The notes: generated by a model not told the origin, from the letters alone. A stretch of 64,000 nt of DNA from Bigelowiella natans CCMP2755 (GCA_000320545.1 ADNK01001130.1:92830-156829), one strand, 5' to 3'. Positions 3,530-57,660 are shown, counted from the stretch's first letter. Numbers and translations: made by a program.

Positions 3530-4000
3530 CTAGCATATGCTAGCATGCTATGCAAGAATCTAGCTAGCTAGGAATCTAGAATGTCTGCATGACAATGTGC
3601 ACATCATTTTGTGTCATCGCGCAGTTCTAGAGTTGCTAGCTAGCGATGGAGCTCACCTTTGATACATGCTAGCATGGCATACCGCGCGGACATCCCGTTC
3701 TGCGGCTAGGCTAATAGGGCACAGCTGACAGTGCGTGCTAGCTAGCTAGGCTGCTAGGTGTGTATAATGATGATCATGATCGAAAGCCGCCGCGGCATGC
3801 ACATCATCAGCTCGATTGGGATCAAGCAAACACCTAGCTACCACGCTATAGGATGCAAACTCTTTGCCATTGTGTTCAAAATGAACGAAGGTGTAGCACA
3901 TGTGTTCGATCAGTTCACATGCAAGTGCATGGTGCTGAATGAAATTCTATGCTTAACCTTGCTTGCATCACCTCGTGCGTGAGAGCTTACGCTATGATCT
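3530..4000. repeat. Palindrome-rich (CTAG/CATG/TGCA/GCTAGC) block in the RPT4/kinase convergent gap
   Basis: CTAGCATATGCTAG, CTAGCTAGCTAG (twice) and CATGCTAGCATG (3665-3676); roughly 15 CTAG in about 500 bp, counted by eye. Confidence 0.8.
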
Positions 4001-4026
4001 TTCGCAAAATATAGAGGGGACTCGAA

Positions 4027-6278
4027 TCAAATTGAGTGGGATGGAGGCGGCTGCTGAATGTTGAGCTGCTGCACTTGTTCCTCCATCTCTCGAAAATTGT
4101 TAGCTAGAACGCTGTCGCGAAGTTCATCATCACGCACTTCTACATCTTCACGAGAATCCGAAGTCCCACTTTAGGTACACAACAATCATAGAAACATTTT
4201 CAGCACTAGACTGTCGATTTCAATGCGTAGTGTGGAATGTCATGCAAATTAATATTTCCTATGGATATTAGCTATACGCTGTCAATCCTGATCGGACGGT
4301 GTCGAAAGCCGAAGTGTTCATAGTTCTGTCATCATCACTCTGGGTATAACAAACACAAAAGTGATGACATTGAAACGAGATAGAATTCCTCCCTGCTATT
4401 CTTACAAAATCATCCTCGTCTTCGTCTTCGTCAGATTGCTTTGCCTCCCGCAGCAACTCAATGTCAGGTAAACATTTCTTGACTAGAGATGCAAGAATCT
4501 GAAACAAAATCCAAAATTTCCAAACGTTTCAAACTCCATGACTGTGTGCCGTTCATTAACTTAGACAACTGAGGCATTGAAACCCAACATTCGAGGATCT
4601 CTTCATCTTTAAAATATGGATGTTGAAAGATCATTGCACCTCTTTTCCGGAAGCGTTTTTAATAAATGGGTGCTGCAACATGTCGCTTGCAGAGGGTCGT
4701 ATCTGGTTCGAGGGATAGAATCAGAATCACACACATTACAGAATAAATAGTCAATGTTCAAAATGTGGAACCTTATAATCCTTAATTAAGCATTTCGCAA
4801 GGAAATCGACAAATTCTGTAGGCCATATTTTAGGGTTCTGTGAAAAAAAAAAGATGAATGAATGTTGGAAAGATTAAAACTTGTGGAAAAAATACATAAC
4901 AACCTTCAGAGTTGGGGGCGGTTGTTGAGGAATGAGGAATAAAGCTCGCATAGGATGTGCATGAGCAAGGGGAGGCCTACCGTCCGCACACTCTGAATAT
5001 GATCGTGTGTGTGACCGTGTGAAATCCCGGACAATTATGTCAAGTTACCGATGCAAGTAATTCCCAGTGACCAAATATCAGCAGTGTAATTGTAGCCAGA
5101 ATGAGTGCGTTTTTTTGAATCCACAACCTAAAATAATGTGTACAAAAGTTTTGTGGAGGCGAGGATGAGGGGAAATCATTAATGAGCACTGACCTCTGGA
5201 GCCATCCAGTATGGTGTGCCGATCAGTGTTCGTGTTTTTGCAAGAGTGTTATCCAATCTCTTCGATACCCCAAAGTCTGCTAGCTTACATTCCCCTTTCT
5301 CTGTGAGGAGTAAATTTGCTGCCTGTTGTGATGCCAATGGCAAACATTCATGCTTTTGATTGTGAAATGTAATGTGAAGGTAACCTTGACATCTCTATGG
5401 ATAATCTTTTTCTTGTGTAGATATTCCAGTCCAAGGAGTGCATGTTTCGCACAAACCGCAATTTCTTTCCATGTCAAGGTTAGTTGACAAATTTCCATCA
5501 TGTCCATCACACTTCCACCAGCACAGTACCTATAGAATTTATGAGCTCATAACAAGTCTTCAATAGTCGGTAATCTAAAAAATGTACTCCATTGCAATCC
5601 AAAAGTGGCCATCGTACACAAAACTCGCTATGTAAGCCTAAAACATAATTGCTTCATCAAAACTGTATTGCAAGTATATTGACAGTCAAAAATGATGTAC
5701 AGTGAGATAGTCGGACTTGCAGCCAGATAAGATCTGTAATTCTGCGAGAAGGTCTTTGTAGTCATCCTTTACAATTGGTTGAGTATCAAATAACCGTTTA
5801 TCAATAGATCTACATTTTTGTTCACCTTCGATATATCCATGATTTTTATAGCACATTCTTTGCCGTCCTTTTTCGAAGTTGCTTTCACAACGATCCCCTA
5901 GCCATACGAGAATTCTCAAACTTAGTTGAATGTCTATGGATAAGAAAAACACGAATTCGTTTAATGTTCAATGCTCAATGTTCTCACATATGCCCCTTTT
6001 CCAAGTTTTTCTCCAGTCATCTCAAAATAATTTTCTGGATTGCCAAATGCATCCGGCCTTTCTGCTGATGGCTTCAACCTATCATCCTTTTCATTGTTAG
6101 TACTGGGAGCACCTTTTTTCAAGGAACTATTCTTCTTTGATGTGTTAATGGATCCTCCATCCCCTTCTTTGCGCTGTTCTTGCTTTTCCGACTGTGATTC
6201 AGGAGAAACACCAATTTCCCCTCGAGACTGCGAAGCTACTTTATTCTCTGCCTCTTGTTTATCCGTGGTCTTGTCCAT
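4027..6278 (-). CDS. STE20/GCK-family (MST/Krs-like) Ser/Thr protein kinase
   Basis: Exons give [19 protein letters not shown]...[35 protein letters not shown]...[45 protein letters not shown] and [13 protein letters not shown]. An acidic tail ends PPPSHSI* at 4027. Start taken at MDKTT (6278). Confidence 0.9.
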
Positions 6279-6596
6279 CGTTGTGGAAGAGTCAATGCGT
6301 AAAACTTCGTTTGCACGAAGGGGGGTGGCGTGAAAATAATTTCGAAGTGCCGCCAACCAGCAAAAAACACATCCCATTCCTTTTATGCGTCAAGAGGATA
6401 TCGTTGACGCAGAAAGGCAGTCTCAATTTTCGTTTTCTCACAGATGGTGCTGCGTCTATTTTATCACTTCAGGAAAGAAACGTAGGCAAATTTTCTCAAA
6501 AATATCATTGAACAGGTGCACAAAACTGGAAAAACCAAACTGTGAAGACTTCTTGCGACGATTTTGCCCTGCGACAAACTTATGATTCAAACGATA
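6279..6596. promoter_or_regulatory. Putative bidirectional promoter (kinase / SEC6), 318 bp
   Basis: Head-to-head start codons at 6278 and 6597; inferred from geometry only. Confidence 0.5.
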
Positions 6597-9500: not shown

Positions 9501-11770
9501 GATAAATGTAAATAAGAAAGATCTTAGATTCCAGTAAATCATTTACTCATCATCACTCTAATTGAAATGATAGAGTTCTATTCGATATCAAGAATTAACT
9601 GCCCAGCTAACTAAAAGAATCCAGGAACATGTTCAAAGGTTAATCATCATGTCAATGTTGTAGGGCTTTCAGAATCTATTTTGCTAGGTGTCTTGAGGTC
9701 GAATTCGGTGAGATAACGCCGGTTCATCAAGAAAATTTTGTGAGGAAGGTTCAAGAGGCCCGATGGAGTAGCCGTAAAATAGTTTAATTGATGCTAAAGT
9801 AGCTGCAAGTAGTTCCAGCATTGGAAGAAGTATGAGGTCATCCAATGGCCTTAGCACAGAGGAGATCGAATCTATTAAATCACGAAAGGATGTAAGCATC
9901 TCTCTTCACTCCGTGATGTCCTTGGTAAATATATACATTTATTCAGTATCCTCAAGATCTTTTTCACCTGATGATGTCATTTGATAACACCAAAAGGCCG
10001 AGAAAGGCTTTCAAAGAGTAACAGATTCTGCTGTCAATGGCCTCGCAGTAAGATTTATTTTTTAATGTAGATAATACTCATAACTGAACGTAACCCTAGG
10101 GATTTGTGGTTTCAATTTGCAAAGAAGAGTTCAAATCTCTATTTTCACCTAGTTGGTTGAAGATTGTAAGCCAGGAGAATTGCCAGAAGCCAACAGCCAC
10201 TTTGAACATAGAAAGTGCCTTAGAACCTCCGCAACTTCTTCAACTCCAGCTATCGAATTGCGCTGTGGCAGCAACGCCAACTTCGGAATCTGGTAGCATT
10301 CCCTTTTTTAAGGAAGAAATTCCTGCAGTCGTACAAATTGCTCAGGTGAAGCCGTGGTTTAATGTGATGAAATGTGTCTCAATGATCTGATACTTAAATT
10401 CCTTTACAGGAGCTCCAACTTGCTATGGTCGATTATGCAGCGTTGGTATAGAAATTTATTCAATTGTTGAAATAAACATTTAGTAATCTATCTAAAGAGT
10501 TTCAATGCTCCAGATATCTGACGAAAAAGTTCAGTCCCAGCTCGCCGAACGACTAGTGATGAGAACTTTGAAAACATATTTTTCTCAGGTGATAAAGTAT
10601 TTTGGCTTAAGTAGAGAGTTCTGATTGTAAACGATTATGACAGTTTGCAGCATCAAAGCGAAGACTCACAGACGATCAAAGAACGGTTTTTTAATTTCGA
10701 AGTTCAGAAAATGTATGATGGTCTGAAAAGTTGAATTTTCGAAGAAATTTGGCTCTGGAATTTCTGCAGATTTAGATGCAATGAAGTCTCGATTAAAGGT
10801 ATTTACTGCTTTAAAAATTCTCAATTTTCTCCTTCCAACCGTACAATTTCTATAGGATCCTTCGGGGATTGAGAACAACAAAGCAGAAGTCTACGCGTAA
10901 GTAAATCATATGCAACAAATTAATATCTAATTATCTCACAAAATTAGGTTTGAGGACAGTATGTTAAACAATTGTTTCGACAAGTTTATGTTTGTTTCGG
11001 ATTTTCTTAATGAGCAAGATCCAGAAAAAGCAGCCGTTGCTTTAACAAATGTATATCTAAAGTTAATACAAACCATTAAGGTATAGTCCTTTATTCAATT
11101 ACGCCATACTTCTGACCAATACAGGCACTGGGAACAATAATTACGGAATTCAACGCACATGAAGGACTAAACTTCGTTACGGGGATGTCGAAGCTACGGC
11201 CAGATCTAAGTGCACAATGGAAGCTGCTTCTGCAACAGGTAGGATGTCCTCAGCGGTGGAGCTTCTTCTTAAATGATTTAGCATCCATTGATCTCTGAAT
11301 AAGCTAATTTTAAGATCACAATTTTTATCAAAGGAGTTCCAGTATCGACTTTCCAATCATGAAGAGGAAACTGAGGTAATATCTACAACTTCTGTATAAA
11401 GATTGTTCATTTTGTAAAGTTTATCCTATCCCACAAGGGTAAATCAGTTGACACAATAGCACAGAGGCTGCGACTGCCCTGGGCGTCCTTGAGCAATGGT
11501 TCTCCTTCCATTGAAAGTGACGTCTCCAGTTCATGGCTTTCGAACTTTGGAGTCACCGTAACGCGCTCCGAGACAGAAGCTACTTCTCATGACCCTCATG
11601 TAGAGTCAAAAATATCCCAAAACGCACCTCCACCTTCTGTGAAGCCAGATGATGATACAAAAGAACAATCAGCTGCTACAGCAGTGAAAAAGACGTCACA
11701 TGTTAGATCCAACACCATGGACACTGACATTGACGCAGAAATAATATCTCTGGATGATTTTCTTTCGTGA
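6597..11770 (+). CDS. SEC6: Exocyst complex component SEC6/EXOC3, many short exons
   Basis: Exon fragments match Sec6 in order: IVEELALLLATPDQLENLPQYK, DPTTLIYSIVVIEME, LVDDLYLVKDEVCPLYPSDYNIL (cf. plant YDYVAPCFPPRYEIF), GPRDLFGILHN, EEFKSLFSPSWL. It has a low-complexity C-terminal exon. Not every exon junction was resolved. Confidence 0.75.
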
Positions 11771-11919
11771 TCGACAAAGATATCACAGCAGCTCTCAACA
11801 GTCCATGGTTTAAGTTCTGATCATGAATGTGTAAAAAATAAAAGCAATGAGCCAGTTATTGAGCATCGAATGAATCATGACACAGCTCAACTATTACAAT
11901 TCTCTTGTTCACAGAATGG

Positions 11920-12480
11920 ACAGATGGTGCGTGCTAGCGTGTGAGATCCAATTGCGAGCGCTACATGACGACAATTTTGAGCATTTCGGCTACATGCACA
12001 TGACAATTACATCTGCGCAGAGTGCAATGCAGACTTGAGAGGACTAGAGGATGTGATGAATCACGAACATGCTAGATGCATGTATGTGCGTTGCATGACT
12101 AATAGCCAATCTAGGTAGCTAGCAATCTAGCAATGCTCAAAAAGGCCTAGATGACTTCCTTAGCAACGGCCTGCTCTAATGCTGGACGAATCATTTCATC
12201 CACAAGCCACCTAGATCAGTTTTAGAGTGTTACATGCATGCTAGCATGCGGCCTAAATGCTCGCGCGCATTTCTAAGCTTCAACTCTGAAACCCTCTGAA
12301 ATGTTCTAAAAAGCTTCTAGCTAGCATGCTAGCATGGTCTAGTGGTTACGACAGAACAGAATCTGTCAAGCGTACATTCACATCTCTTGATCTAACGAGC
12401 TAGCTAGCTAGTTAAACATGCATGATTGCACATCTAGACACGGCAAAACTAGAAAAGGTTACATCCCAAGTTTCAAACAG
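11920..12480. repeat. Palindrome-rich block in the SEC6/GNAT convergent gap
   Basis: CATGCTAGCATG at 12237 and 12325, AGCTAGCTAGCTAG, and many TGCA/CATG. Confidence 0.8.
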
Positions 12481-12703
12481 TATGTTGCACATCTTGCACA
12501 CAGCTCACTCACTATGTCGAAGCGTTAATTGCTGTTGAATTGAGTAATGAAACCATGAAGCCTTAGCCTGCCACTAGTGCATTTTGCGGACATTCACAAC
12601 ATGTATTTGAATTCTACAATGTCTAATGGAAGGAGAACAATAATGTCCATTATTTACTTGAGGTGATTACTTTTTTTGTCATTTATTTGATCATTGTGTT
12701 CTT

Positions 12704-13931
12704 CTATTCGAAGGGAGATTCAAAAGTTGATGTCCTTCTGACCATGAACGCCAACACACCATTTGGACTGTCGTAAGGTTCCCTGTGCAACATTTTCTGC
12801 GTCCTAGCAAATTTCAAAATACATGTTATAAACCATTCCGATCGTGACAATCAACAATAAACCTGTAGCCAATACGCTGATAAAATCCTATTGCATGAGC
12901 TTGTGAATGCAGGGATGTCGTTCTGTAAATTTTACATTGCACAACAAGGATTCAACCCAAGAATAATGATTTCAAGATGGTAAAGATTCGGGAATTGAAT
13001 TTATTACATTAAGTTCTTTTCCTCGGCAAGCATGTGAATCATGTCCATGACACTCTGTGCATATCCTTGCCGTCGATACTCCTGGATGCACAATGATGAG
13101 AACAGCGAAACACATAGTTCTGGCAAATACCTATAGCCGTCATTACCTTGAGCACTGCAACGTTCGACACAATTCCTTGTCGATATAATCCGTCTCTCAA
13201 AGTAACCATCCTCCCTGATGAAGCATATCCCTCATTTTCTGACTACCGCGAGCGTAAAAAAAAATCTTTTTTTGACGGGCAAACATACCTGTAGCAACTG
13301 GGATGGTAGGGTTTTCTCTATGGTACGACACCACATGGAAAACCTACAGGCGAGTCAAAAGTAGATATGAACTCTCGCGCAAGAAAATAGCGGAATATCA
13401 TAGGAGTCACCATACCTCAGGCATCAATGCGGGATTTCCCTTTGAGTCCATGTCCCACTGGTCAAAGGCATTGAGAATTCCCTAATTCACACAATACTAC
13501 TTACAAAAACCGCACGATGGGTGATTGAAATTTACCTGTTCTTCGACAAACACTTTCTTCCGAACATGCATGGCGTCTTTAAGATTCTCTAGTTCTGATG
13601 CCATAATCGTACGAGGTGCAGCCCTCCCCTCTTTACTGCTTTTTCGAAGGTCTAGGCTATCCTCCCCATTTCCTATACTTGATCTTAATTGTTCGATTCC
13701 TGGCTCTTGGTCCCGCATTGAAATTCTTATCCTTCGCGTAGTAGCTGGCGTCCTAATTCGATGCGCCGTCCCATGTAGCGAGCATCGATTGCTCCCTATG
13801 GTTATACTCGAGCCAGATCCAAGGCTAGGAGGGTGATTAGAGCGGATTTTACTGTATAGACATGCAAGAGAAAGGCAGAAGAGCAGACTCGAGAACGGGT
13901 AACTGGTAGCACAATCTCGTTGGGTCATCAT
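12704..13931 (-). CDS. GNAT N-acetyltransferase (ElaA/YjcF-like) with an N-terminal signal-plus-transit-like presequence
   Basis: Exons give VRKKVFVEEQ|GILNAFDQWD, SNVAVLK|EYRRQGYA (acetyl-CoA motif A) and LHSQAHAIGFYQRIGY (motif B). The N-terminus has a hydrophobic stretch (YPFSSLLFCLSLACLY) followed by an S/R/T-rich segment. Confidence 0.8.
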
Positions 13932-15136: not shown

Positions 15137-15169
15137 GTTAACTAGACCAATGATGACTACCGCTAAACA

Positions 15170-15870
15170 TTAGGATACATTCGGAGTTGTTAGAGTACAT
15201 GCAACTACTTAGTACTTCGAGATGCCAACGTGATGATAGCTAGCAAACAGCAAACAGGAGATTTCGAAGACTCATTAGCTAAGAGCAACTAGCATGTTCA
15301 CGTTCAAGAGTTACAAAACAAACTTCGTGGTGTCCATTACTGAGACAAATTTAATCATGTGCAAGATGGTGTGTCACATCATATATATAATGAGTACTTC
15401 TAGACTTATTCTATCCGCTCAGCGCTTAGCGAAAGGACGGTCACCATTTCAGTTTGTCTAGTTGTGCTGTCTAGCTGTCCTGAATCTAGCAATATGTGCC
15501 TACGCCGCGGGCACATAACGCTCAGTTATTTGCAAGTAACAAGACGGCAGCGAGTTAATGCTGTACATGATGTTCCTTGCTTGCTAGCTTGTGTGACGAT
15601 AATTCTTGATAGTGTCGCGCTCGCATCGCTAGATCGCATCTCTAAATCTGACTAGCTGCGAGGATCAGCGCAATTCTAAAAGTACGTGTGCACTTAATAG
15701 TTTGAGCGCATGGGCGTGGCTGTATGTACACGCATTCTTTGCTAGTTTTGTGGCTGCATTATCAAAATCTCTAGATGTGTTGGGTGTGATCTATTTCTGG
15801 TGTCCCTCCAGAAGCAAACCCACCCTTCGTTGCATTAGCTAGCTCTAGCTTGACGCATCTTGCATGTGTA
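15170..15870. repeat. Palindrome-rich block in the CaaX-gene/TOR convergent gap
   Basis: Repeated AGCTAGC, CTAGCATG, TTGCTAGC, CGCTAGATCG and TAGCTAGCTCTAGCT. Confidence 0.7.
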
Positions 15871-16046
15871 CAATAGACAGAACAACTTCGATGCTAAATA
15901 GCTACTTTTTAATTATCAATATGACCTCAACAACAGCTTATACCATTCATGATATTGCATGCAGGAAGAACGCCATTGGATGCAATACCAGGCGAATGGT
16001 ATGCTCTGTGTATGTAATATTCTCATGGACTTCATTTCTCCTCGAT

Positions 16047-16785
16047 TTACCAGAAAGGGCACCATCCAATGTAACATTGACTTAGATTTGCGTGCGATGT
16101 TGCTTGACGGATCAACTTTTCCACTTGTTGAGGCACATTCAGCGGCTCACCTAAGATGTGTAGTACGAAAGACGAGGAGGTTGACACATGCTGTTGTCGT
16201 TGGACATGAGCATTACATAATCATGACTGTGCATCTCTCTATTCTTCTTCGCTGTTGCTTTTCGTCAAGAAAATGTAGTTATTACCGTCTCCAAAATCCT
16301 TCCCATCTAGCTTGTCAGCTATTCGTCCTATTACTTTAAGGGCTTTTTGATTCAAAACACCTGTCCCCCCTACCCCTTCTCTGTTATTATTGTTTTCCGT
16401 TGCGGCCGCTTCTTCCTCGCGGCCGAGAAGTGCTGCAGAGCTCTCAGAAAGCCCACTTCCCTGATCACCAGTAGAAACACAGATAGATATATCACATGCT
16501 TGTGCCATAAAAATGGCCAACTTCCTCCTCCTCCTCCTCCTTCTCCCCTAAAGCTTCACGCACCTTTTCATCGTCATCATTGTCATCTTCTTCAATCTCC
16601 TCCTTTTGCTCTGGATTCTCATGCAGGCGGCTAACTTTGGTTTGCAAGAGACGCCAATTTATGAGCGGATCATATACGAATGCCTCTAACACTGCCATGA
16701 CACTCTCCTTGTGTCCTCTTAACACACGCATCACCGCCTCGCACGTGGAACGGAAGTTTCCTTCAATTCCGCTTACCTAAGAATA

Positions 16786-16819
<34 letters not shown>

Positions 16820-17024
16820 GCTCCCTAAGAATTCTTCTAGTACCATCACGTGAAAGTAGGCTGTTACCTCCATTGCATTGATCAGCATTCGAGTGAGCCG
16901 GAAAGGAATTTTCTCAGGAAACTTTTCGCGCTGCATTGCCACCTGACAACAATTCATTGTGACGATGATGCTTGCTAAATGATGACTCACGGAATGACTT
17001 ACGAAGCTGCTTATGAGTCAACGT

Positions 17025-17063
<39 letters not shown>

Positions 17064-18313: not shown

Positions 18314-18359
<46 letters not shown>

Positions 18360-18905: not shown

Positions 18906-18946
<41 letters not shown>

Positions 18947-19372: not shown

Positions 19373-19404
<32 letters not shown>

Positions 19405-19994: not shown

Positions 19995-20035
<41 letters not shown>

Positions 20036-20624: not shown

Positions 20625-20657
<33 letters not shown>

Positions 20658-20981: not shown

Positions 20982-21014
<33 letters not shown>

Positions 21015-23068: not shown

Positions 23069-23099
<31 letters not shown>

Positions 23100-23632: not shown

Positions 23633-23665
<33 letters not shown>

Positions 23666-24345: not shown

Positions 24346-24378
<33 letters not shown>

Positions 24379-33485: not shown

Positions 33486-33559
33486 TAACATAGCGTGTCT
33501 CGTTATTTGCGAACTTTGCTGCAACTACTGATCTCCAGCAAGTTGCGTTGTGATGTAAT

Positions 33560-33870
33560 TACATATACAACGGCATCGATGCAATAAAAGTACGTAGATG
33601 TGGATGTGCACATGCGATATTTACGACATTTACGACATTTGCATTGCTGACTGCGTGAATAAGAGCTATATGCGATACATGCATGAATCAATGAATGTGT
33701 TGTGTTCAGAGCAGACTAGCAGAGCTGATCGTCTGAAGACAACATATCGACAACGCACACATTACACACGCCAGCGTGTACATTGCTCGCGCTCGATCTA
33801 GCAGCGTGCGCTCATGATAAGCAACGCACGTGTACATGCAATGTGCTACATGTTGGCTTGATGACGGAGA
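33560..33870. repeat. Palindrome-rich block in the ABC-F/SOS1-like convergent gap
   Basis: TGCACATGCG, ACATGCATG, GACTAGCAGAGCT, GATCTAGC and GTACATGCAATGTGCTACATG; weaker in CTAG than the other blocks. Confidence 0.55.
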
Positions 33871-34185
33871 TAACCACATACACACAAAAAGTGAATTTAG
33901 TGATCAATGGAATCGAGAACTACATGAATAAGTGAAGTGAAATGCAATTGAAAATACACGTGAAAGTTCAAGCATGCTCGTCATAGACTAACTCTAATAT
34001 AGCGTGATAGGATGAAAAATGTTTACGCTCATACACGTATCTCACTAATAGATGTTAAATCAATTACTGTGGACTGTGGTTGAGTAATCATATAGTCACC
34101 AACTCTGTGTGAAGTGTCTCTTAGTAATATAGTAAAGAAAAGAACTCCCACCTGAGCTATATCCCCGCTTGTGTAAAAAGATATT

Positions 34186-37199: not shown

Positions 37200-37236
<37 letters not shown>

Positions 37237-41350: not shown

Positions 41351-41386
<36 letters not shown>

Positions 41387-43533: not shown

Positions 43534-43629
43534 CAATAAGAGAGTACAGATACCATATGCTAAAGCGGAATCTGCATATACTTCTCGGCTCGATTCGATC
43601 AATGATGCAACTATTAAATCTAAATATAT

Positions 43630-43810
43630 CGACTATTGCCCGATAATGTAGACTACATGATACTTTGTGTATGCTATGCGAGCAGCCTAGCAGCGCTAGC
43701 GCGATGTCGTCGTTGATCATGTTCATCCAGCGGAATGAAAATGCATGGCAAATGGGATACACCCGCACGCGCGCTACAGCTTGCGCAGCTCATACATAAT
43801 ACAGATCTCC
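43630..43810. repeat. Palindrome-rich block in the VMA22/FANCD2 convergent gap
   Basis: GCCTAGCAGCGCTAGCGCG, ATGCATG and GCGCGCTACAGCT. Confidence 0.6.
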
Positions 43811-43946
43811 ATTTGCTCATTTCGCAAATGAGTCCGACTCTTTCATTCTAGCATTGCGTGTTGCCGAGTTAACCTTTTTTGCTATTTCGTCGAAAGCGAG
43901 TCCGTACTCACAACTAGCTATTCCTAGCCGCCTTACTGATATCTTT

Positions 43947-46900
43947 CTATTGTTCTCTTTCATTTTGAGCTTCACACTCTGACTCTTCTTCAGCATCTCC
44001 ATTGGCCTCTTCTTCCTCCTCATCCGAAGGTGGTGTCTGAGATATTTCAGTACCATCCATTGCTCTGTGCTTGAGATTTCCTTGCCAAAATGCTCCCAGA
44101 CAATTGTTCCCCTTGAACAATTTCTTAATATGATAGATAAAGCTTTCCATAACCTTCTTTGATGATGGTACAAGAGATATTAGGTTTGAGAGTCTATTTC
44201 TCTTCCCGTGCGTGCATATCATTTGCATAATACGCGTTCCTTGTTGTATATCCCTTATCATTTCGATGATATCGTCTCTATATTGGGAGAAGTTCTGGTG
44301 CAGAAACGGCATGTGCTTCACGTATGTATCGACTAAAACCTTTCCCGATCTTAAAGCAGATACCAATAAATTCACTTTTCCATAGAACTTTTTGCATAAT
44401 CCCATAAGATTTCTAAACACGTGTGAGTGACGAGAGAGACAGACTATACCGGGGCTAGCTGCTGCAGGAAGCCTTTGGCCTGCGGATTGAGTTACTTTCT
44501 CGAGCGTGACGGTAAAATAGAAGGGAATTGTTTTTTCCGTTAAAGTTGCATGAAATGGGCTTTCATCACTCTCAGATTCGTCTCCTCTGTCATCATCTTC
44601 TTCGGTCTCATCGTTACCGTCCTCGTTTTCCTTGTTCGCACGTGATTTTTTCTTTTTAGATTTTCGCTTTTGCTTCTTCTTCTTTCTTTTTCGACGCTTA
44701 GCCGCTGGCATTTCTAGCATTGCAGTCGACACTAATTCCTCCAATGCGTCCAAGGGGCTCTTTGCGTATGTAATGAAAACGCGGACAGATCGGCTTATGG
44801 TACTACTGTTGAGCTTCGAGTCTGAGTCCCATTTCGTCTGAAGCAGCTCACAGGCGAGTTGGCTAAGACGTGATCGACACGCGGTCAATTTTTCTGGGCT
44901 GATGGCTAGAGCCTTTTCCATGACTTCAATCGCAATCACTTTCTCCTGGAATCGTGATAACGCACCCAGTTGTTTCTCAAGAAACTTGAAGACTTGGGTT
45001 GCAATCTGCATCTTTGCGTCAGGGTCAGGAAGAATCTCCATAGAATCTCGTTTTTTACCTTTACCCCTTTTAGAATCGTTCTCTGTTGGAGCCACGCATG
45101 AGGTGAGGCGATGCAAAGCATGCCAGAAAGCAGGTTCGCTATCCAACCCCCCCTCGGCACTATCCAGAATCATCTTAGAGCAACGAATGACGCTCATGAC
45201 AATGGCTTGTAGGTCTTTATTATCCATTAAGGATTTATTCGCTTGGTCTGCATTCAATAGCGTATCCGCTATCTCGTTTAGGTGCCGGCCGACATGTTCA
45301 AATATTGGCGAAATTGAGGAAAGAAGGATCTCTGGTGGCTGGGCTGCACTCTTAGACTTGTTCGGCTTTTTTTTATCACCAAAGAACCCAAATTTGCGTT
45401 CTCTTCTGAAGGAGGGTTTGAGCAGTAGTTCTAGTTCCCCGATGAAATAGTTTAAAGTTGTGGGATCAAGCTTAGGCTCCTCCGATTTTATTTCCATCAT
45501 CTTTGTGTCGCTTTCAGAGGCCGCTGAAATTTCCAAGGGCAGCTCTAGAATCTGAAATGCGGACTCCAAAATGGTCCGGTAATAGGGCTTCAAGCTAGCC
45601 AAGAAAGAAGTATCGTCATTTTGAATGTCTTTTTTCTTTGAGGCTTTTTTGCCCTTGGGCTTAATTATTGCAACAGCTTCTCGTGCTTGAGCTGCAGATA
45701 CACCCATAGGAACAAAAGTTGAGGCTGTAGGCATTTGACGCATTAAACTGCCCAGCGCCTTTTCAAGATTTAGTATGTGATAAACTCTTTGGCAGACCTT
45801 CCTCCTGGAAGCCTTGTCTCCCTCCCCGCAAAATGCGTTTAGCAACTCTCTCATCCATTGAATCGCGTAGAAAACGCACGAGCAAATTAATTCTTGCTTT
45901 TCCCTGCCCATGTCAGAGATGTCATTCAATTCTTCGTCGAAGAGTATAAGTTTGGCTCCTAATAGCGCGTCCAGGCCTGCCCGGGATCCGTCATTGCTAG
46001 CTCCTTCACCGACTTGGAGAAGGCGAAATATAGATGCCATGCAAAACACCTTTGAATTGTCAGTTTCCTTGTCACTTGCCAATAGGGGCCACAGCAGCAA
46101 CTCGATTCCATCTTCGCCATCCAACCCCATCCAGGGGCTTGAATCATCTGATTCGAAGGCTTTAGGCTCGACAAGAAAATCCTCTTGAAACGTATCTGCA
46201 ATTTTGTCTATAACTCTTTCGATAATGTATGGAGAAAGATTTCCTTTCAAAATATATGAGGAAATCTCATCTGCCAAGAATATTCGAAGATCTGAAGATT
46301 CGGAAGTGCAGCTAAAGATGTCCTCGAGTAACTGTGAGATCTCGGTTTCCTTCGCCTTATCTTGAACAACTTTTTTTGTTTTATCGACAAGGCGTGAGAG
46401 AAGGGATACTCCCCCTATTACCCCTATTTCTTGGTACCTTGGTGTCGAAAGCTGTTTTTTAATATTTATCATCAGCTCGGTACCGAAGTTACTAGATTTT
46501 CCCGCATCGCACGTAGCTATAATGCTGAAAATGCTGTAAACATTTCGGAGTTGCGGTCGTGAGAATCCAGATAGATAATCTAGTATCCCTCTCACAAAAG
46601 CTACCATAGGCTGCATTGATGTGGAGTCGGCCTCACAAATTCGTTGCAATTCCCTTAGGGAGACATTGACCTCATCGTCGATGCCAGAACCAATGTGGGT
46701 GATTAAATTTCCTATTACGTCTTGCTTGATATAGATTGTATCACATGAGAGAAAAAGTCCACTATAGAATTGTCCTCCGGCATTTCGCAGTATCATCGAA
46801 TCCGCACGAACAAGATTCCCAGCGATATTCAAGATTGAAGCAGAGAGATCTTTTATGATGCTTAAACGTTGTTGAAACGCATTCTTGAAAAATTTCAATG

Positions 46901-48322: not shown

Positions 48323-49082
48323 ATGGGCAATGGAGCATCCGCCTCAAGACCAAAGTCCAAGACAGCCGATCTAGAAACTCACTTTCGTGTGGCAAATCTA
48401 GACGATGCAGGAGCACTTGCAGCGTTACAGGTGAAGGCCTGGAAAGACACCTACCGCGGCATCATAAACGATGAGTTTCTGGAGTCCAAGAGTATGAGTG
48501 AATGCCACAAGGAACGAAAGTGGGTTAAGATACTTCAGGATCGATCCTGCCTCACTCTTATCCTCTCAAAGAAAAACTGCAAAGAAATGTTAGGATATAC
48601 CACGGTTGCAATTGCTGGAGGTAGATCTAGGGAAAAAATCGAGAGGACTTTGAAGGAGGATATCGGCTTAAAGAAGAAATTTGGCACGAAGGTGCACGGA
48701 GAGATGAGAACGTTATACCTCAGCACTGATGCGCCTAAAAGGTATGTTATTAACTTTATTTATCCAAAGGCTACCCGTTTTATATACTATCTCTGCCGTA
48801 TGTGTAAGAAAAGGCCTCGGTTCGAAACTGTTCGAACACGGATACTCTTTCTTAGAACGGCACCTAGGAGAAGGTTGTGTTATGTGTCTTTGGGTTATCG
48901 CGGAGAATACACCAGCCATGAAATTTTATGAGAAACTTGGCTGTAAAATCGCAGTGTCAAATTCAAGGGCTCGGTTTGGAAAGGGTTTGTACAGATATGT
49001 TGGACTGGTTTATTCTAAATATCAACCAGTAGCTGAACTACAGAATGAAGCAAAGGAAAACGGGAAAGACAGTGCTCAATGA
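48323..49082 (+). CDS. Bacterial-like GNAT N-acetyltransferase with an N-myristoylation-type start (MGNGAS)
   Basis: RVANLDDAGALAALQVKAWKDTYRGII; GEMRTLYL...PKR|KGLGSKLF (one GT-AG intron, ~48742-48808); LWVIAENTPAMKFYEKLG. Confidence 0.85.
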
Positions 49083-49149
49083 AAGTTGCATCGTCAGAAC
49101 TCGTCTTTCTAGAATTTGAAATATACACCAACAAACTTTTCGAATTATA

Positions 49150-49720
49150 TTTCGAGCAAGCTAGCTAGCTAGACATCTCTGCTAGACATCGCTGTAAATA
49201 GAGGCACAGGAACACGCCTGCTAATCTAGCTAGAAACTCGGCTCTGCAGTAAGCAATGCTAAATATATTTGTATTTACACTAGCTATAGGTAATAATGAA
49301 ATTTAACTTTTGCATGATAATGAAATAAACATGTCTAGCTAGATGTGTTCATGGTGTGAGACGGATGTAATGAATCAATTAAATTTATTCAATGACCATC
49401 CTCATGTAGCTGTGGCAATGCTAGAATGCAGCGGCTACAGCGCTAATGTTGAATCTGTTGGTGTAATCAATCGTCAAATTGAATTTGTTAAATGGTCATC
49501 CTGATGTCTAGATGTAGCTGTGCAATGCAGCGGTTACAGCGCTAATGTTGAATCTGTTGGTCACCGCTGGCGATACGTGTGTTTCATGCAATCAAATGAA
49601 AGCTTACGTTTAGACGTCTCTAGGCCTAGATGCAATGCAGTATCTAGTGATGTGCACATCATGTGCGTAGATCTTTACTAGTTTAGATCTTATTGCAAGT
49701 ACTAGAATAAATGGCGACTG
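49150..49720. repeat. Palindrome-rich block with an internal ~100-bp tandem duplication in the GNAT/LIN9 convergent gap
   Basis: AGCTAGCTAGCTAG and TCTAGCTAGA. AATGCAGCGG(C/T)TACAGCGCTAATGTTGAATCTGTTGG occurs twice, about 100 bp apart. Confidence 0.8.
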
Positions 49721-49947
49721 AAAAATATTAGACTAATATGCGATGGCCAAGATTGCAAACACACATGACACGGAACAGTGTGTCGAATGTTATGAATGTT
49801 AATTAGATACACTATTTATATTAACATAATTTAGTTCAACTTAGTGGAAGCAGCAATTGCATCAATGCCGCATCATTCATTCACACTCAACAAATGAGAT
49901 TAATTTCACTCGGAGATTCATTCGACATTTCTCGTTTTTTTCATCAC

Positions 49948-52900
49948 TCATACTGCAGAGAGTGAGAGCATTGATTGCATCTGTCTGAAGGAGGTTTCAA
50001 TCTTTTCAAAAAGCCTTTAAAAACAACAGTATTAGATTTGTGTTTTAAATATGTTTTGATGGACACTTACTTTTGATTTTGAGGATGAGTCGGCCGAACA
50101 CTTTCAAGGAAGGCATTAAGTCCGAGTGGTTGCAACCCCCTCTCAGCGCAGAACTAATCAAATTTTACGGCAGCCAGAGAAAGTTGTGGAAATTATAGCC
50201 ATGAAACCGCTACAAAATACAGTTTGCGCGACTTTAAAAAAAAACCTATTCGATTACAAATTGAACAAAAGAGACGTGTTGCGAGAATTTAGGGCCGTTA
50301 GCTGAATTCCTAGTTGACCTTTATGAGTAGAACGAGGCTAATACAGCAGACGATTAAATTGCTCATCTTCGAAGGCATTCCACTGGAGGATTTGGCCGAA
50401 AGACTCCCCGTAGACACGAGCCTATCTCGAAGACTCTGCATGATCTCTCTAATAATTGGTAGTGGCAACAACAACAGGCAGTGGTGGTGCAACCAATGTT
50501 TTTCTTTTTACATGTTTTACTATCGAAAGAGTGTAACAGCATCTAGGTTCGTCGTCGTCGTCATCATCGTTGTCATTGTCATGGTTATCCCTCCCATTCT
50601 AATTACTACCGTGCTCTTTGATAGCAGAGTTGGGAGACATGGACAGAGAGGTCCGAACCGGCTTCTCCAAGGGAAATGCCAGATTGCCGAAGCCGCATTG
50701 CCTGTAGTGTGATTATAATAGCTCAATCATCTTTTATGAGATACCCACGCAGCAGTTTCGCAGGAGGTAATAACACAAACAACCTGCAAAGCATTGTCGA
50801 GGTCTCGGCTTGCCTTTTCTAGTTCCACAATGACCCATGCACACTGCTGCTTGAATGCTGGCGGTATAGCAACTACTGGAGGGGGAGGCAGAGGCGTAGA
50901 TGCAGCTGCGGAGTCCGACGATGATGAGGAAATGGCAGCCTTAGTAATGCTCTTTAATTCATTGTTGTTTTTATTTTTGGCAGTTCTATAAGTCCCACCA
51001 TTTTGCAATGCGGGGCTGCTGCTGCTGCTAGTCGTTGTCATATGAGGGGTAGAGGCGGCTGCTCCTTCGAACTGCTGTTGTTTTTTCTGATCTCTTTCCT
51101 TTTTGACTGTCGTTGTTTTCGCGGATACTACTTTTGCTTTAGCCTTAGCCTCTGCCTCGTTTTGCATTGATTCCGCCTTATGAGTTGAAAGATGATGTGA
51201 GAGGAAAAGGAGGAAGAAGGAGGAAGGGGAAGGAGGACAGACGAGCAACTGCACACCTACATGTTTCTCACTGCCTATGTGTCTAGGTCGCCTGAACCTC
51301 CTCTCCCCCTCTATCTTTAAATGCATGTGTGTAAGTGTGTGCTACGGAGATAAGTTCTGCAACGTACGCATAATGCTAGTAAACGTTTATTTCTTCCCCC
51401 CTGCCCAAGCTAGTAGCAGTTCCTTCTCAAATTACCAAGTCATTCATCGTACGAAGATGTGTAAGAAGAGCTTCCTTTCGGTCAAGAAGTCTTAGAAGAT
51501 TAGCCACCATATGAGCATCACCATGAGCATGAGGAAACCGAGGTCCGACTGGGTGTTGAAGCTGCGAAAGGGAAGAGTGCAGATGGCCATAGGGCATGAC
51601 TTTGGTGTCAGAGACCAAGACGCCGCTGCCAAGACCTTCTTGATCGAAAGCAATCTGATATGCGTAGGGGTCTCCCCCCCCAACCGAACCTTGTTGATCC
51701 GCTTGACCACCACGTTGGGAAGAGAAGGAAGAGGAGGAGGAGGAGGTGGTGGTAGTCGAGGGGGAGGATCTTGGCGGCTTCGGCATGACAACTCCAGTGT
51801 GAAGTTCTCCGGTGGAAGGATGGACTGCTACTACAGTCTGACCGTCAACCAGACGTGCAGGGACCTCCTCAGGGAAAGGAAATTCATCACAGACAACTGT
51901 CAGGCCTTGTTGTATACACCTCACATCGTCCCGATATCGCTCTAGTTTCTTTCTCTCCTCACGGAAGAATGCTGCCGACATACGCCTAAAGATAAATTAT
52001 TAATCGACAAGGAAAATGTCTTCAATAAATTTGAGATAAAAGAAGAGGGGGAAATTAAAAACGAAATCTTTACGATACTGTCAATGGTTATTCGCTCTGA
52101 AATTAAAACAAAGTCCTCATATATATTGCAACAGGTCATTGTCTATACTCTGCAGAACGCAGAGTATAGAGGACCTCAAGGCGTTGCTTGGTCATTTTTT
52201 CTCATCATTGCGAGTTGTTCACTTAACGACGACAGATCTCGAGAAAGAATCTCAAATTTCCTTTTTTTGACAATCGTATTACCACCACCAATAGCATGCA
52301 TAAGGTCCATCTATCCTCCTCCTCTTCCTCCTCCCCTTTCTGTCGCATCATGACATAAAGATAACTACTACTAAGACTACTTTATTACCTGGGTTTTCCG
52401 ATTATCGATCTAACGTAGCTCCACTCTGTTCTCGTTATTTGCTTGATGTTCCCCATCCCATACTCGTACAAGCACTCCATGAAATCGTTTTGCGCAAAGT
52501 ACAAACGATCGATTGCCGAGACAAAAAACTCACAACGGCACCATGACCTGAACTTCTTCGATTTCAAAGCTACGGTGAGCTGGCGTAGGCATTCCTCGCT
52601 CTTCGGGCTGGGTATGATCGCTGGTTAAATACACGCAAATGAAGTGGCAGTAAAGATGATGATGATGATGATGATAATTATCGTGAAGACGACGAAAAAT
52701 ATGATCAAATTACCTTGCATAGCGCTGGAATCAAAGGTATTTCTAAAGCGCACTTTCATCTGAGAGGTATCTATCTTTCCAGTTTCAGCAATAAGCTGCT
52801 TTCGCTGCTGTTTGGAATCTATCCGAGTAGTCGTCGTCTTTGACTGTTGAGGAGGGGTTGACGTTGTTGCACCTGCTGTAGAATTTGTTGAAGACGACAA

Positions 52901-55328: not shown

Positions 55329-55412
55329 TGTGGATATTTAACAGCAGGTACATTATTTACACACCAACCACTTTTTGGGTTATTTAGATTACGATTTTAG
55401 AGCCCGTTTGAA

Positions 55413-57107
55413 ATGACACGAGAAGCAGATCGTTTGGAGCGCTGTCAACGACGAAAATTGTGGCAAATATCAGCTCTTTTATCAACTCGACATATAAAAT
55501 ATACGTCTCACGTCAGAAACAGAATGCTTTATATTTACCGTTGAAACAGATTCAAATCTCTCTCTCAGGCACATCGGTTTGAGAGTTGATGTGTATTTTA
55601 TGTCGCACACAAACTCGAGAGGTCATCTGCTTTTTATTCTTTCCAGCGTGTGTCGTTTTTTCGCAAAGAATCTTGAAGCCATTTGTACTTTACGACAAAT
55701 TAGAAGACACAAAAACAACATTCATGAAAATGCCCTTTATTCGAACAGGATATACAAACGTTGGCAAGTCGTAAAGATGTAAATCGGGAGGCTCTACGAC
55801 AACTTGCAAGAACCTGAAACGCCAGCTCAACAAGCCGGTGCACATGAGCGCGAAACGGCGGGATGATGCCCCTGCCCAGCGCAAGGCCCGGGGCCATCGG
55901 AACGCAAAGAATGCTGACATGAAACTCACTGTAAAAAACAAAGATCCTCGATCGAAATCGAACGGGGCAGCCTCCCCTGACGGCGAAGGTAGGGAGGTAG
56001 ATCTTAAAGCGATGGAGTCTTCACGCGTCAGCTTGCTTGATGTGGCAAAAGAGATAGCACAAAAGCGAGCACATACAAGGACGACAAGGTATGTAGAAAG
56101 GAAGTCAGAAATAGCGTCGGAGATATTTGGGGAAAATCAAATTCATTGCAACGTAGAGTTGAGAGGTTGAATCTCGTGCAATTTGCCATAGCCCTTGTCC
56201 AAGCTAGGTATAACGCGCTACAATAAACCTTTTCAGGCTGGTGTACACTGCCACTAGGGGTACAAACGATGGAATCGAAGGTAGTGTAATATAGTTTATA
56301 TTTATACCTTTTAGACTTTCTTACAGGGGTTTTGTTTCTCAACAGAGTTCCACGGGGACTGGTTCAAAAAAAATTCGAAGATTCACGATGTTACTGGACT
56401 TGCTACCTTAATATCGGGTACAATGTTCCTGCACATAGTTGAAGCACCTACAAAGGTATGGATGAATTGAATATCTATTCGAGAGTAGTGACCCTTACAG
56501 ATGAAACCGATCGTCATCATCTTCTAGATTTTGCTCGGCCTTCTCAAAGATTTAATTGTCGCCGAAGAAAAAAAACTGACAATGAAAAACGTCAAAATAA
56601 TGGCGTTCACAGAGGAAGTAAGAAAGCATTTCAATAAACAAAAGGAATAGCGAATCAAGTTTATTCCATACAGGTTTCAAGAATTTATAGAACATGGACT
56701 TGTGAATCAGTGGCAATGGATCCAGATGATGCAGGGGATGTTGAAATTCTCACGCTTTCATGGGGAATATGCAAAGACATGTTGAAAGTAATAGCCTTAA
56801 ATGTGTCATAAATACCTTTTCTGAACTCTTTCAAATTAAATGAACAGATGGGAATTGATGCGAAAGCGGCTACACCAACTAAAGCGATGTTCCAAAAGTT
56901 AGGATCATGTTACAATAAATATTGTTCCCCACCATGACTGAAGCTCCATTTATCAGGTATCTACCTTCAACTCAGAAGTTGGTGAAGGTATCATCGAGTA
57001 ATGATTTGTGCACTCCAAGCGAATATTTGAAAATATTCCACTCAACGGTGGACTTCACAATGGACAGTGAAAAACACTGGCCTGCAATGGATTTAGTAGC
57101 CTTTTAG
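55413..57107 (+). CDS. Hypothetical multi-exon protein, start uncertain
   Basis: A series of plus-strand open segments bounded by AG/GT: ...RVSLLDVAKEIAQKRAHTRTTR|VERLNLVQFAIALVQAR|LVYTATRG..., ILLGLLKDLIVAEEKKLTMKNVKIMAFTEE, and a last exon ending WPAMDLVAF* (57107). No homology recognised. Confidence 0.45.
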
Positions 57108-57239
57108 ATTGCTTAACCTGAGATAGCTCACTCCCCTGACTGGGTAATGAAGGGAGGAATCTTGCATGTCATTTCACTTCAGAATGTCCATCTAGACATA
57201 CTCATGCAAGAAGGCGTGAAAGATGAAAAACTGGGGTAT

Positions 57240-57660
57240 GCTCCATGCTAGCATGGTCTGCGGCATGCACAGGGGCTTGTACAAGCAGCAGCTGCACGCA
57301 AGCAACATCACGCAGTGCATGAGTAACAATGTAACGATGCGCGAGTCTCTACCTCATCATTGCTTGCGGACACGCGATCGTTGACCGCTGACCTTGCTTT
57401 CTACGTGCCGACGCGTTGCGTTGCACGAGTATACAAATGAAGAAATGCACAGCTACATAAGGATGACCCAATGCAATATTGAACAAATTTAATTGATTAA
57501 TTACATTCGTCTTAGCTACATAAGGATGGCTATTGAACACATTTAATTGATTAGTTACATCCGTCTTACAAACGAATATACGAAGAATAATAGACACAGG
57601 TCTATCATAAGACTGTCGCTTTACTGCGCATCTCAACGCAACGCTATTGCGAACTTATAA
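57240..57660. repeat. Palindrome-rich block with a tandem ~60-bp unit in the hypothetical/hydrolase convergent gap
   Basis: CCATGCTAGCATGG (57243-57256). Two tandem AGCTACATAAGGATG...ATTTAATTGATTA.TTACAT.CGTC units are homologous to the 49.4-kb block on the opposite strand. Confidence 0.8.

Follow-up and report, generated by a model that had tools for sequence, protein, structure and literature searches.

Tc1/mariner elements (Tc1, Mos1 and Sleeping Beauty) have a target-site duplication of TA only, and in their excision footprints this duplication flanks a short constant residue of the element ends. The overhangs left behind are self-complementary or nearly so, which makes the scars uniform; local hopping gathers them in clusters. 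Excision of piggyBac is seamless: its self-complementary TTAA overhangs re-anneal and TTAA is restored, leaving no scar. Distinctive features also occur where transcription units converge, as with base J at the strand-switch regions of kinetoplastids and the domain boundaries of dinoflagellates, which are marks of chromatin or base modification on polycistronic units. In the alga Bigelowiella natans, foreign DNA undergoes TpA to TpG/CpA hypermutation, with clusters defined by Rho TpA <= 0.43 together with Rho CpA+TpG >= 1.52 in consecutive 1-kb windows (Mettrop et al. 2026, bioRxiv 10.64898/2026.01.13.699255); CTAG, palindromes and convergent gaps are not mentioned in that work.

Here we describe a window of 64,000 nt, the whole stretch of DNA analysed, which by its sequence is nuclear DNA of Bigelowiella, a chlorarachniophyte (MMETSP transcripts match it at 100% protein and 99.6-99.9% DNA identity). 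Its palindrome-rich blocks are spacers between convergent genes piled with 8-bp insertion scars that are probably footprints of the excision of a cut-and-paste transposon. The arrangement would be analogous to that left by Tc1/mariner elements in having a duplication on both sides of a few constant, end-derived nucleotides, in the uniformity of the scars and in their clustering. It differs in that the duplication is of 4 bp of almost any sequence, with CTAG as the remnant, and in that the scars are confined to convergent spacers. As with piggyBac, religation of a 4-nt palindromic overhang would yield an invariant junction, although in this case the element ends would have to supply the palindrome, and the duplication stays. 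The position recalls strand-switch marks, but what lies here are scars in the sequence itself, with target duplications, between monocistronic genes. The hypermutation of Mettrop et al. occurs in the same organism and adds CA/TG as TA is lost, so that CATG and TGCA could arise from TATA-like sequence, whereas the gaps described here are not depleted in TpA.

Gap limits were set by stop codons and a coding map, and motifs played no part in them. Orientation was taken from Pfam matches for the Rpt4-like AAA (+), mTOR (-), ABCF (+) and FancD2 (-) genes, from C-termini and stop codons for the last exon of the Rpt gene, for mTOR and for the two genes whose ends lie at 11770 (+) and 12704 (GNAT), and from a self-trained coding map for the remaining genes. 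Seven convergent gaps were counted, with tentative borders on both sides of gap G and on the right side of gap F; a possible eighth convergent junction at ~62-63.4 kb was left out of the count. Searches of the whole window gave no Rfam match at gathering score and no tRNA. The gaps and their features are as follows, an exact scar being CTAG between two identical copies of a tetramer.

3415-4038, no strand: convergent gap A, between the Rpt4-like proteasome ATPase gene (+, stop 3412-3414) and a - gene (stop 4039-4041); 16 CTAG, one scar with a single mismatch (3536-3547) and four exact scars, CTAG-CTAG-CTAG (3560-3571), AGTT-CTAG-AGTT (3623-3634), CATG-CTAG-CATG (3665-3676) and CTAG-CTAG-CTAG (3738-3749)
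11771-12703, no strand: convergent gap B, between a + gene (stop 11768-11770) and a GNAT acetyltransferase gene (-, stop 12704-12706); 19 CTAG and eight exact scars, their CTAGs at 11934, 12044, 12127, 12241, 12329, 12339, 12404 and 12449, with CATG-CTAG-CATG and TGGT-CTAG-TGGT overlapping at 12325-12346
15137-16046, no strand: convergent gap C, between a + gene (ORF end 15136) and mTOR (-, FATC end ...GWCPFW*, stop 16047-16049); 14 CTAG, four scars with a single mismatch and five exact scars, their CTAGs at 15400 (ACTT), 15458 (TTGT), 15471 (CTGT), 15584 (CTTG) and 15629 (ATCG)
33486-34185, no strand: convergent gap D, between the ABCF gene (+, stop 33483-33485) and a - gene; rich in CATG/TGCA, with alternating pyrimidine-purine runs at 33604-33616 and 33824-33840 and one exact scar, CAGA-CTAG-CAGA (33712-33723)
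33586-33589, + strand: poly(A) site of the ABCF transcript, whose 3'UTR is ~100 nt long
43534-43946, no strand: convergent gap E, between a + gene (stop 43531 or 43649, uncertain) and FancD2 (-, stop 43947-43949); two exact scars, CAGC-CTAG-CAGC (43683-43694) and CATT-CTAG-CATT (43844-43855)
49083-50300, no strand: convergent gap F, between a myristoylated GNAT-like gene (+, stop 49080-49082) and a DIRP/LIN9-like gene (-, right border approximate); 17 CTAG, ATGT-CTAGCTAG-ATGT (49331-49346) and four exact scars, three CTAGs in a row (49161-49172), AATG (49417-49428), ATGT (49504-49515) and TTTA (49674-49685)
49372-49565, + strand: tandem pair of a ~95-nt repeat in gap F
56938-57854, no strand: convergent gap G, between a + gene (stop 56935-56937) and a putative - gene (stop 57855-57857), borders tentative; rich in CATG/TGCA, with one exact scar, CATG-CTAG-CATG (57244-57255), and two reverse-oriented copies of the F repeat (57425-57575)

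The sequence-only reading had reported seven motif-rich blocks lying only between 3' ends; all seven are present at the positions given, every one of the seven + to - gaps is motif-rich and the other classes are low. CTAG occurs at 13.6 per kb in convergent gaps, compared with 2.9 in divergent gaps, 2.6 in coding DNA, 2.5 in the tandem class, a single gap since the window holds only one, and 1.7 in introns and other DNA. Convergent gaps are denser than the other classes also in GCTAGC (3.8 per kb vs 0-0.26), CATG (11.3 vs 3.3-4.8) and TGCA (12.4 vs 4.1-6.1). Over the whole window GCTAGC has 30 matches (10.7 expected), 21 of which lie inside blocks; CTAGCTAG has 12 (0.76 expected), confined to blocks A, B and F; and CATGCTAGCATG, with at most one mismatch, has five (0.21 expected), confined to A, B and G. 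CTAG is abundant in blocks A, B, C and F (14-19 each); D, E and G contain just 2-5 and are distinguished mainly by CATG/TGCA. As had been noted, the blocks are not copies of one element, since their mutual alignment stops at palindromes of 12-16 nt, the exception being a repeat of ~60 nt common to F and G. The idea of a shared palindrome grammar fared less well: after dinucleotide control the enrichment stays strong for CTAG (observed/expected 4.15) but not for CATG (1.54) or TGCA (1.12), and with CTAG alone strongly over-represented given the dinucleotide content of the gaps, there is no general palindrome grammar.

The flanks of CTAG point to its origin. Exact 4-bp direct repeats surround 25 of the about 75-79 CTAGs in convergent gaps (about 0.5-1 expected) but only 1 of 125 outside them, which is chance level; 1000 third-order Markov simulations that kept CTAG abundance gave 0.5 on average and never more than 4. 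Across the window, 26 of 204 CTAGs have identical 4-nt flanks, compared with 0-3 for each of 13 other non-microsatellite palindromes, and flanks identical at other lengths are few (five at 3 nt, one at 5 nt, none at 6 nt). Sorted by 0, 1, 2, 3 or 4 flank mismatches, the gap CTAGs number 25, 13, 12, 22 and 7, and those outside the gaps 1, 8, 26, 55 and 35, the latter corresponding to background (rates of 1.4% for no mismatch and 7.2% for one). The residue between the duplicated copies is constantly CTAG, and no other spacer of 0-8 nt is stereotyped. The duplicated tetramer is other than CTAG in 21 of the 25 scars and is of 17 kinds; its symmetry is weak, with C or A at the first position in 22 of 25 (never G) and G or T at the fourth in 20 of 25, and the flank consensus of CTAG (G at -1, G at +1, C at +2, T at +3) is not a clean palindrome. 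Scars reach a frequency of ~4.5 per kb in convergent spacers, where they are often repeated within a few tens of bases, clustered scars lying 10-114 bp apart, and some lie inside earlier scars (CTAG-CTAG-CTAG); none occurs in 25.7 kb of introns. About 25-30 excess CTAGs lack a recognisable duplication.

Unoccupied sites are preserved in the repeats of F and G. The two F copies, which are paralogues and not alleles, serve as each other's empty sites: copy 1 reads ...GCAATG-CTAGAATG-CAGCGG where copy 2 has GCAATGCAGCGG, and copy 2 reads ...GATGT-CTAGATGT-AGCTG where copy 1 and both G copies have ATGTAGCT. Aligned across the F and G paralogues, empty and hit sites are ATGTAGCT against ATGT-CTAG-ATGT-AGCT and CAATGCAG against CAATG-CTAGAATG-CAG. 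The empty sites contain neither a CTAG remnant nor a second copy of the tetramer, and we saw no empty site that already bore CTAG beside the tetramer duplicated in its counterpart. The event is therefore an insertion consisting of a target-site duplication of exactly 4 bp plus an invariant CTAG, and with both the flank duplications and the empty sites preserved, the blocks are accumulations of this 8-bp scar. GCTAGC, CTAGCTAG and CATGCTAGCATG are accounted for by the same insertion, CATGCTAGCATG and CTAGCTAGCTAG being special cases of XXXX-CTAG-XXXX.

The richness in CATG/TGCA is a second, independent layer at the dinucleotide level. Rho in the gaps is 1.3-1.4 for CA/TG and 1.6 for GC, CC/GG is low, and scrambled alternating pyrimidine-purine runs are four times commoner there, unlike arrays of intact (TA)n/(CA)n, which are rarer; this layer is best read as transition-decayed (TA/CA/TG)n tracts, to which TpA to TpG/CpA hypermutation possibly contributed. 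That such hypermutation made the blocks as a whole, TA having become TG/CA to give CATG/TGCA while CTAG survived as a refractory context, is unlikely. The process exists in B. natans, and in raw counts, sorted by the base flanking the mutated base and without normalisation for site availability, CTA/TAG is hit about three times less often (20 of 206 listed TpA mutations of the NCLDV on scaffold 10, compared with 52 for GTA/TAC and 67 each for TTA/TAA and ATA/TAT; bioRxiv 10.64898/2026.01.13.699255). The gaps, however, are not poor in TpA (rho 0.81-0.85, compared with 0.83 in other non-coding DNA), individual blocks (rho TA 0.78-1.23, CA+TG 1.27-1.73) likewise lie above the cluster threshold of 0.43, and sparing could produce neither a ten-fold rise in CTAG nor flanking 4-bp duplications, so hypermutation explains at most the CATG/TGCA layer. 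The earlier suggestion of a mutational scar survives in the broad sense, through insertion with target duplication in place of deamination. Decay of 5-methylcytosine (CpG to TpG/CpA; CCAG/CTGG to CTAG) would fit the enrichment in TG/CA, but it is extremely improbable as the origin of the blocks: the gaps show no CpG depletion (rho 0.90-0.94 vs 0.79 in other non-coding DNA), which leaves such a route to CATG/TGCA unsupported, precursors containing CC/GG are rare, and CTAG was gained as an insert and not by substitution.

The same scars bear on whether the palindromes are functional, as sites under selection for a bidirectional terminator or insulator factor that binds CTAG/GCTAGC/CATG, or as substrates of a symmetric DNA methyltransferase. 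We regard this as quite improbable, even though the blocks lie strictly between 3' ends, the palindromes are identical on both strands, richness in GCA/TGC/CATG recurs in a convergent gap of a distant relative and the only poly(A) site mapped in the window lies at the edge of block D. At that site four MMETSP contigs (L004-L007) align to 31251-33589 at 99.6-99.9% identity, L006 entering an A tail, so that block D and its scar are downstream of, and outside, the ABCF mRNA. The CTAGs bear the signature of random insertion with varied 4-bp duplications, a gap may hold anything from 2 to 19 of them, which suggests neither a set dose nor a set position, blocks D, E and G are nearly devoid of them, the general palindrome excess vanishes after dinucleotide control, and no CTAG scars occur at FancD2 loci of distant relatives (L001-L003, 40% identical). 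A host origin, in which a nuclease or topoisomerase acting at convergent-transcription collisions leaves 4-nt staggered breaks that are filled in, with CTAG added on re-joining, is very unlikely. Type II topoisomerases cut with a 4-nt stagger, equal to the length of the duplication, error-prone topoisomerase II repair reportedly yields 2-4-bp duplications in yeast and in cancers (ID17), torsional stress builds up in convergent gaps, and the window holds no element; yet outside CTAG arrays the gaps show no enrichment in simple 4-bp tandem duplications that lack CTAG, the 8-bp CTAG insertion is absent among 21 de novo indels from 3,132 mutation-accumulation generations, and we know of no repair route that adds a constant tetranucleotide. 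Replication slippage of (CTAG)n or of a microsatellite with an 8-bp unit could account for the CTAGCTAG(CTAG) arrays and for a few two-copy repeats of 13 nt within blocks, but it is highly improbable given the variety of duplicated tetramers, the make-up of each scar as 1.5 units of a different 8-mer and the complete absence of CTAG from the paralogous empty sites.

Excision footprints remain the probable source. The donor would be a DNA transposon of the cut-and-paste (DDE) type, which would cut its target with a 4-bp stagger and have ends of the form 5'-CT...AG-3' or 5'-CTAG...CTAG-3'; on excision, either the flanks would retain 2 nt of each element end, or a self-complementary CTAG overhang would be kept and would re-anneal. 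The weakly symmetric target positions, as a dimeric transposase would give, the location of the single mapped poly(A) site upstream of block D and the lack of scars at the FancD2 loci of the distant relatives speak for excision footprints, whereas the lack of an intact element and of the CTAG insertion among de novo indels, the excess CTAGs without duplication and the flanks that are not clean palindromes suggest otherwise. We found no intact element or filled site (a 4-bp duplication with inverted ends, CT..AG or CTAG) and no transposase gene in the 64 kb. We know of no described transposon superfamily with this exact footprint, and a literature search found none. B. natans is reported to have eight DDE transposase genes (PMC12730881).

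That the scars lie in convergent gaps alone and are missing from introns is atypical of footprints, since 8 extra bp within an intron ought to do no damage. Spacers between convergent genes may be untranscribed or weakly constrained and could thus have gathered many copies, which local hopping would cluster. Insertion might be targeted to non-transcribed 3' spacers, or selection in a compact genome might act against even transient insertions in promoters and short introns, and both routes could operate together. A role in termination, insulation or DNA modification is no longer required to account for the sequence of the spacers between convergent genes.

The window consists of eukaryotic nuclear DNA that contains introns and has a G+C content of 43%, and neither Rfam families nor tRNAs were found anywhere in it. 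The limits of the intergenic regions were set without reference to motifs, from stop codons that we read directly and a self-trained coding map. Since Pfam returned almost no match for 20 small gap-flanking ORFs, gene orientation was taken from this map together with hand-read C-termini. The genes placed were as follows:

Stop 3412-14, + strand: Rpt4-like proteasome ATPase (Pfam; stop codon read)
Stop 11768-70, + strand: gene left of gap B (stop codon read)
Stop 12704-06: GNAT gene (stop codon read)
16.0-28.9 kb, - strand: mTOR (Pfam; C-terminus ...GWCPFW, stop 16047-49)
Stop 33483-85, + strand: ABCF (Pfam; stop codon read)
Minus strand: Na/H exchanger with cNMP domain (Pfam)
Stop 43947-49, - strand: FancD2 (Pfam; stop codon read)
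Stop 49080-82: GNAT-like gene (stop codon read)
Minus strand: DIRP/LIN9-like gene (Pfam)

The ABCF ORF (32415-33482) matches a protein from an MMETSP transcript at 100% identity and one from Bigelowiella longifila at 89%, and four MMETSP transcript contigs match 31251-33589 with 99.6-99.9% identity. These matches assign the window to Bigelowiella, a chlorarachniophyte alga, the species being almost certainly B. natans. The ABCF intron 31410-31505 is retained in two of the four (cited as L004 and L005), and, owing to a frame-changing indel between strains, one gene call is split into 127 + 355 aa while others give 482 aa. Intron microsatellites of the mTOR gene (16100-28900, - strand) are strongly strand-biased, with GTGTGT occurring 56 times in sense and 5 times in antisense.

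Seven convergent (tail-to-tail) gaps were delimited: A (3415..4038), B (11771..12703), C (15137..16046), D (33486..34185), E (43534..43946), F (49083..50300, right border tentative) and G (56938..57854, both borders tentative). The sequence-only reading had placed palindrome-rich blocks exclusively at such junctions, and the densities below bear this out.

Motif densities (per kb) in classes of the window
Class: CTAG; GCTAGC; CATG; TGCA
Seven convergent gaps (5.5 kb): 13.6; 3.8; 11.3; 12.4
Introns, nine putative divergent gaps, one tandem gap, coding: 1.7-2.9; 0-0.26; 3.3-4.8; 4.1-6.1

The enrichment of CTAG, CATG and TGCA in the convergent gaps of the window is real and statistically overwhelming. 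CTAG occurs 204 times across the window (o/e ~1), yet is extremely clustered, and GCTAGC, CTAGCTAG and CATGCTAGCATG are each commoner than in shuffled sequence and lie nearly all inside the blocks first singled out. Gaps A, B, C and F are CTAG-rich, and CATG/TGCA is the main mark of D, E and G. The blocks had also been described as not alignable end to end; indeed, all-against-all BLAST of the gaps recovered nothing in common beyond palindromes of 12-16 nt, apart from a short repeat shared by F and G. Near 62-63.4 kb, in a stretch of ambiguous gene orientation (60-64 kb), there may be an eighth convergent junction; it carries no CTAG scars of the kind described next.

Every CTAG in the window was checked for a flanking direct repeat. 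Identical 4-nt flanks (XXXX-CTAG-XXXX, the scar) were present at 26 of the 204 sites, the other 13 non-microsatellite 4-nt palindromes gave 0-3 cases in the same test, and CTAG with identical flanks of 3, 5 or 6 nt gave 5, 1 and 0. The seven gaps hold 25 of the 26 exact cases; the last falls within coding sequence, in an exon of the GNAT gene, and a single case is what chance predicts for the 125 CTAGs found elsewhere in the window. Among the 79 gap CTAGs, 25 have exact and 13 one-mismatch flanks, against background rates of 1.4% and 7.2%, and a third-order Markov simulation preserving CTAG abundance (1000 runs) yielded a mean of 0.5 exact cases and a maximum of 4. No stereotyped spacer other than CTAG was found in a search of 0-8 nt. 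The target is weakly two-fold symmetric, X1 being C or A in 22/25 cases (never G) and X4 being G or T in 20/25. GCTAGC results because the duplicated tetramer is often C-initial (15/25) and G-final (12/25), CATGCTAGCATG is CATG-CTAG-CATG, a special case of the scar, and CTAGCTAGCTAG is a scar inserted into an earlier CTAG.

The nature of the event is revealed by the short repeat, present as two tandem copies in gap F and two further copies in gap G. The sequence ATGT-CTAG-ATGT-AGCT in one F copy corresponds to the empty site ATGTAGCT in the remaining three copies; CAATG-CTAGAATG-CAG in the second F copy corresponds to CAATGCAG in its twin. Each event thus inserted 8 bp, consisting of CTAG and a second copy of the four target bases, and it is close to certain that the CTAG richness of the gaps reflects insertion scars. 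Scars reach a density of ~4.5 per kb in the convergent gaps, are spaced 10-114 bp apart, are nested in one another and make up at least 200 bp of the 5.5 kb of spacer. The repeat itself (~60-95 nt; 49372-49565 and, in reverse, 57425-57575) is confined to these two convergent gaps, with no further copy in the window, and a metagenome scan with its core gave 19 matches, all chance AT-rich ones without extended similarity.

To characterise the remaining signal, gaps stripped of exact scars were compared with other non-coding DNA. Their GpC rho is 1.57 versus 0.93, CpA/TpG 1.34-1.43 versus 1.21-1.26 and CC/GG 0.52-0.58 versus 0.88-0.93, and CATG and TGCA are ~2.5 times denser. Given gap dinucleotides, o/e is 1.12 for TGCA, 1.54 for CATG and 4.15 for CTAG: dinucleotide composition accounts for TGCA and most CATG, not for CTAG. 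A general palindrome enrichment was rejected, as the dinucleotide expectation is exceeded by CTAG alone, apart from a mild excess of CATG, AGCT and TCGA, and the reading as a shared palindromic grammar is given up. Derivation of the motifs by 5mC deamination, also suggested from sequence, is ruled out because CpG is undepleted in the gaps (0.90-0.94 versus 0.79) and the CTAGs carry target duplications. Scrambled alternating pyrimidine-purine runs of at least 10 nt are four times commoner in gaps, and intact dinucleotide microsatellites are rarer there. Such a composition is expected of (TA/CA/TG)n tracts decaying by transitions; TpA to TpG/CpA changes, in particular, turn TATA into CATG or TGCA. 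B. natans has recently been shown to undergo TpA-specific hypermutation (bioRxiv 10.64898/2026.01.13.699255), and in our own tally from the preprint table, unnormalised for site availability, the CTA/TAG context is the least mutated (20 of 206, versus 52-67 per other flanking class). The gaps are not TpA-poor (rho 0.81-0.85) and do not qualify as hypermutation clusters as defined in that preprint; at most, hypermutation has helped to shape the CATG/TGCA layer.

Three loci distantly related to FancD2 of the window carry no scars. In one of these (L001, GCA_014466275.1, 40% identity) the convergent gap at 4238-4630, devoid of XXXX-CTAG-XXXX, is rich in GCA/TGC/CATG/GCAGC, and the compositional layer may accordingly predate the scars and be more widespread. 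Elsewhere in the window, palindromic compound microsatellites of the form (CA)n(TA)n(TG)n occur at 61990-62123, 63046-63143 and 63742-63833, and (CA)n(TA)n at 37201-37263; this form would arise if TpA to CpA changes spread into a (TA)n array at one end and TpA to TpG changes at the opposite end, possibly linking it to the TpA hypermutation. A direct duplication (63051-63160 and 63741-63850, ~690 bp apart) includes one such microsatellite. About 7 of the 15 insertions among 21 de novo indels of B. natans end in ...ACA (GACA, CAACA, ACA, TGTTTGTAACA, ACACA, TACGCGCAACA and CATTACA; supplementary table of bioRxiv 10.64898/2026.01.13.699255), which looks like a second stereotyped insertion type, a pattern on which the preprint does not comment.

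The scars are probably footprints of cut-and-paste transposon excision. Cut-and-paste transposons, with Tc1/mariner elements and Sleeping Beauty as the textbook cases, classically leave on excision a few constant nucleotides enclosed by a target duplication of fixed length, and by this comparison the window scars likewise join a target duplication to constant residual nucleotides. In the simplest model, an element would cut its target with a 4-bp stagger and have the ends 5'-CT...AG-3', excision leaving 2 nt per flank, or 5'-CTAG...CTAG-3', in which case a self-complementary 4-nt overhang could re-anneal, which would explain the uniformity of the scars. Their clustering and nesting, as local hopping would give, fit a transposase, the weak two-fold target symmetry is consistent with one, and eight DDE transposase genes are reported in B. 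natans (PMC12730881). Searches of the 64 kb for an intact element (4-bp duplication with inverted ends matching at 12/14 or better) and for XXXX-CTAG...CTAG-XXXX pairs returned low-complexity or chance matches, with no occupied site; the scar form is absent from the 21 de novo indels of 3,132 mutation-accumulation generations (bioRxiv 10.64898/2026.01.13.699255); and a literature search for a CTAG footprint or 4-bp duplication gave nothing relevant. For these reasons we place the transposon origin no higher than probable. It is very improbable that a host break-and-rejoin process at convergent transcription writes CTAG with the 4-bp duplication, CTAG then being protected. Such a process could perhaps involve a domesticated transposase or a topoisomerase, with CTAG shielded, for example by methylation, from TpA-directed hypermutation. 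Convergent spacers would in that case gain both marks and length by an active process and form a readable record of its events. The plain 4-bp tandem duplications of a topoisomerase-type signature are unenriched once CTAG arrays are removed. A putative terminator, insulator or modification role for the blocks is improbable: it is not needed, and it fits poorly with a CTAG number that varies from 2 to 19 between gaps.

The one mapped poly(A) site, that of ABCF (33586-33589), lies ~100 nt past the stop codon, with block D and its scar further downstream; in other gaps the first scars lie 36-264 nt past the left-hand stop codons. We infer that, in a genome this compact, only the spacers that separate two poly(A) sites are free of both transcription and promoters. 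The element may target such DNA, or insertions elsewhere may be purged before excision. Sequence preference alone is insufficient, since ~250 CATG sites outside gaps carry no scar. In searches for transcripts that would place further poly(A) sites, exact look-ups of the 117-aa GNAT ORF and the FancD2 ORF gave no match, nor did a protein search with the GNAT ORF; a metagenome scan with the Rpt 3'UTR pattern gave 0 matches, and TGTAA/AATAAA positions were inconsistent as poly(A) proxies.

These results put a concrete, testable mutational mechanism in place of a tempting "regulatory grammar" and counsel caution in inferring function from motifs in little-studied genomes. The scar is easily counted genome-wide, so that existing assemblies and strain data could settle the idea quickly, and it is relevant to the TpA hypermutation recently described in B. 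natans. With ~4.5 scars per kb in convergent spacers against 32 kb of introns and other gaps spared, the target or selection bias is striking, and the scars point to a chlorarachniophyte cut-and-paste element or another insertion process that leaves an unusually uniform scar.
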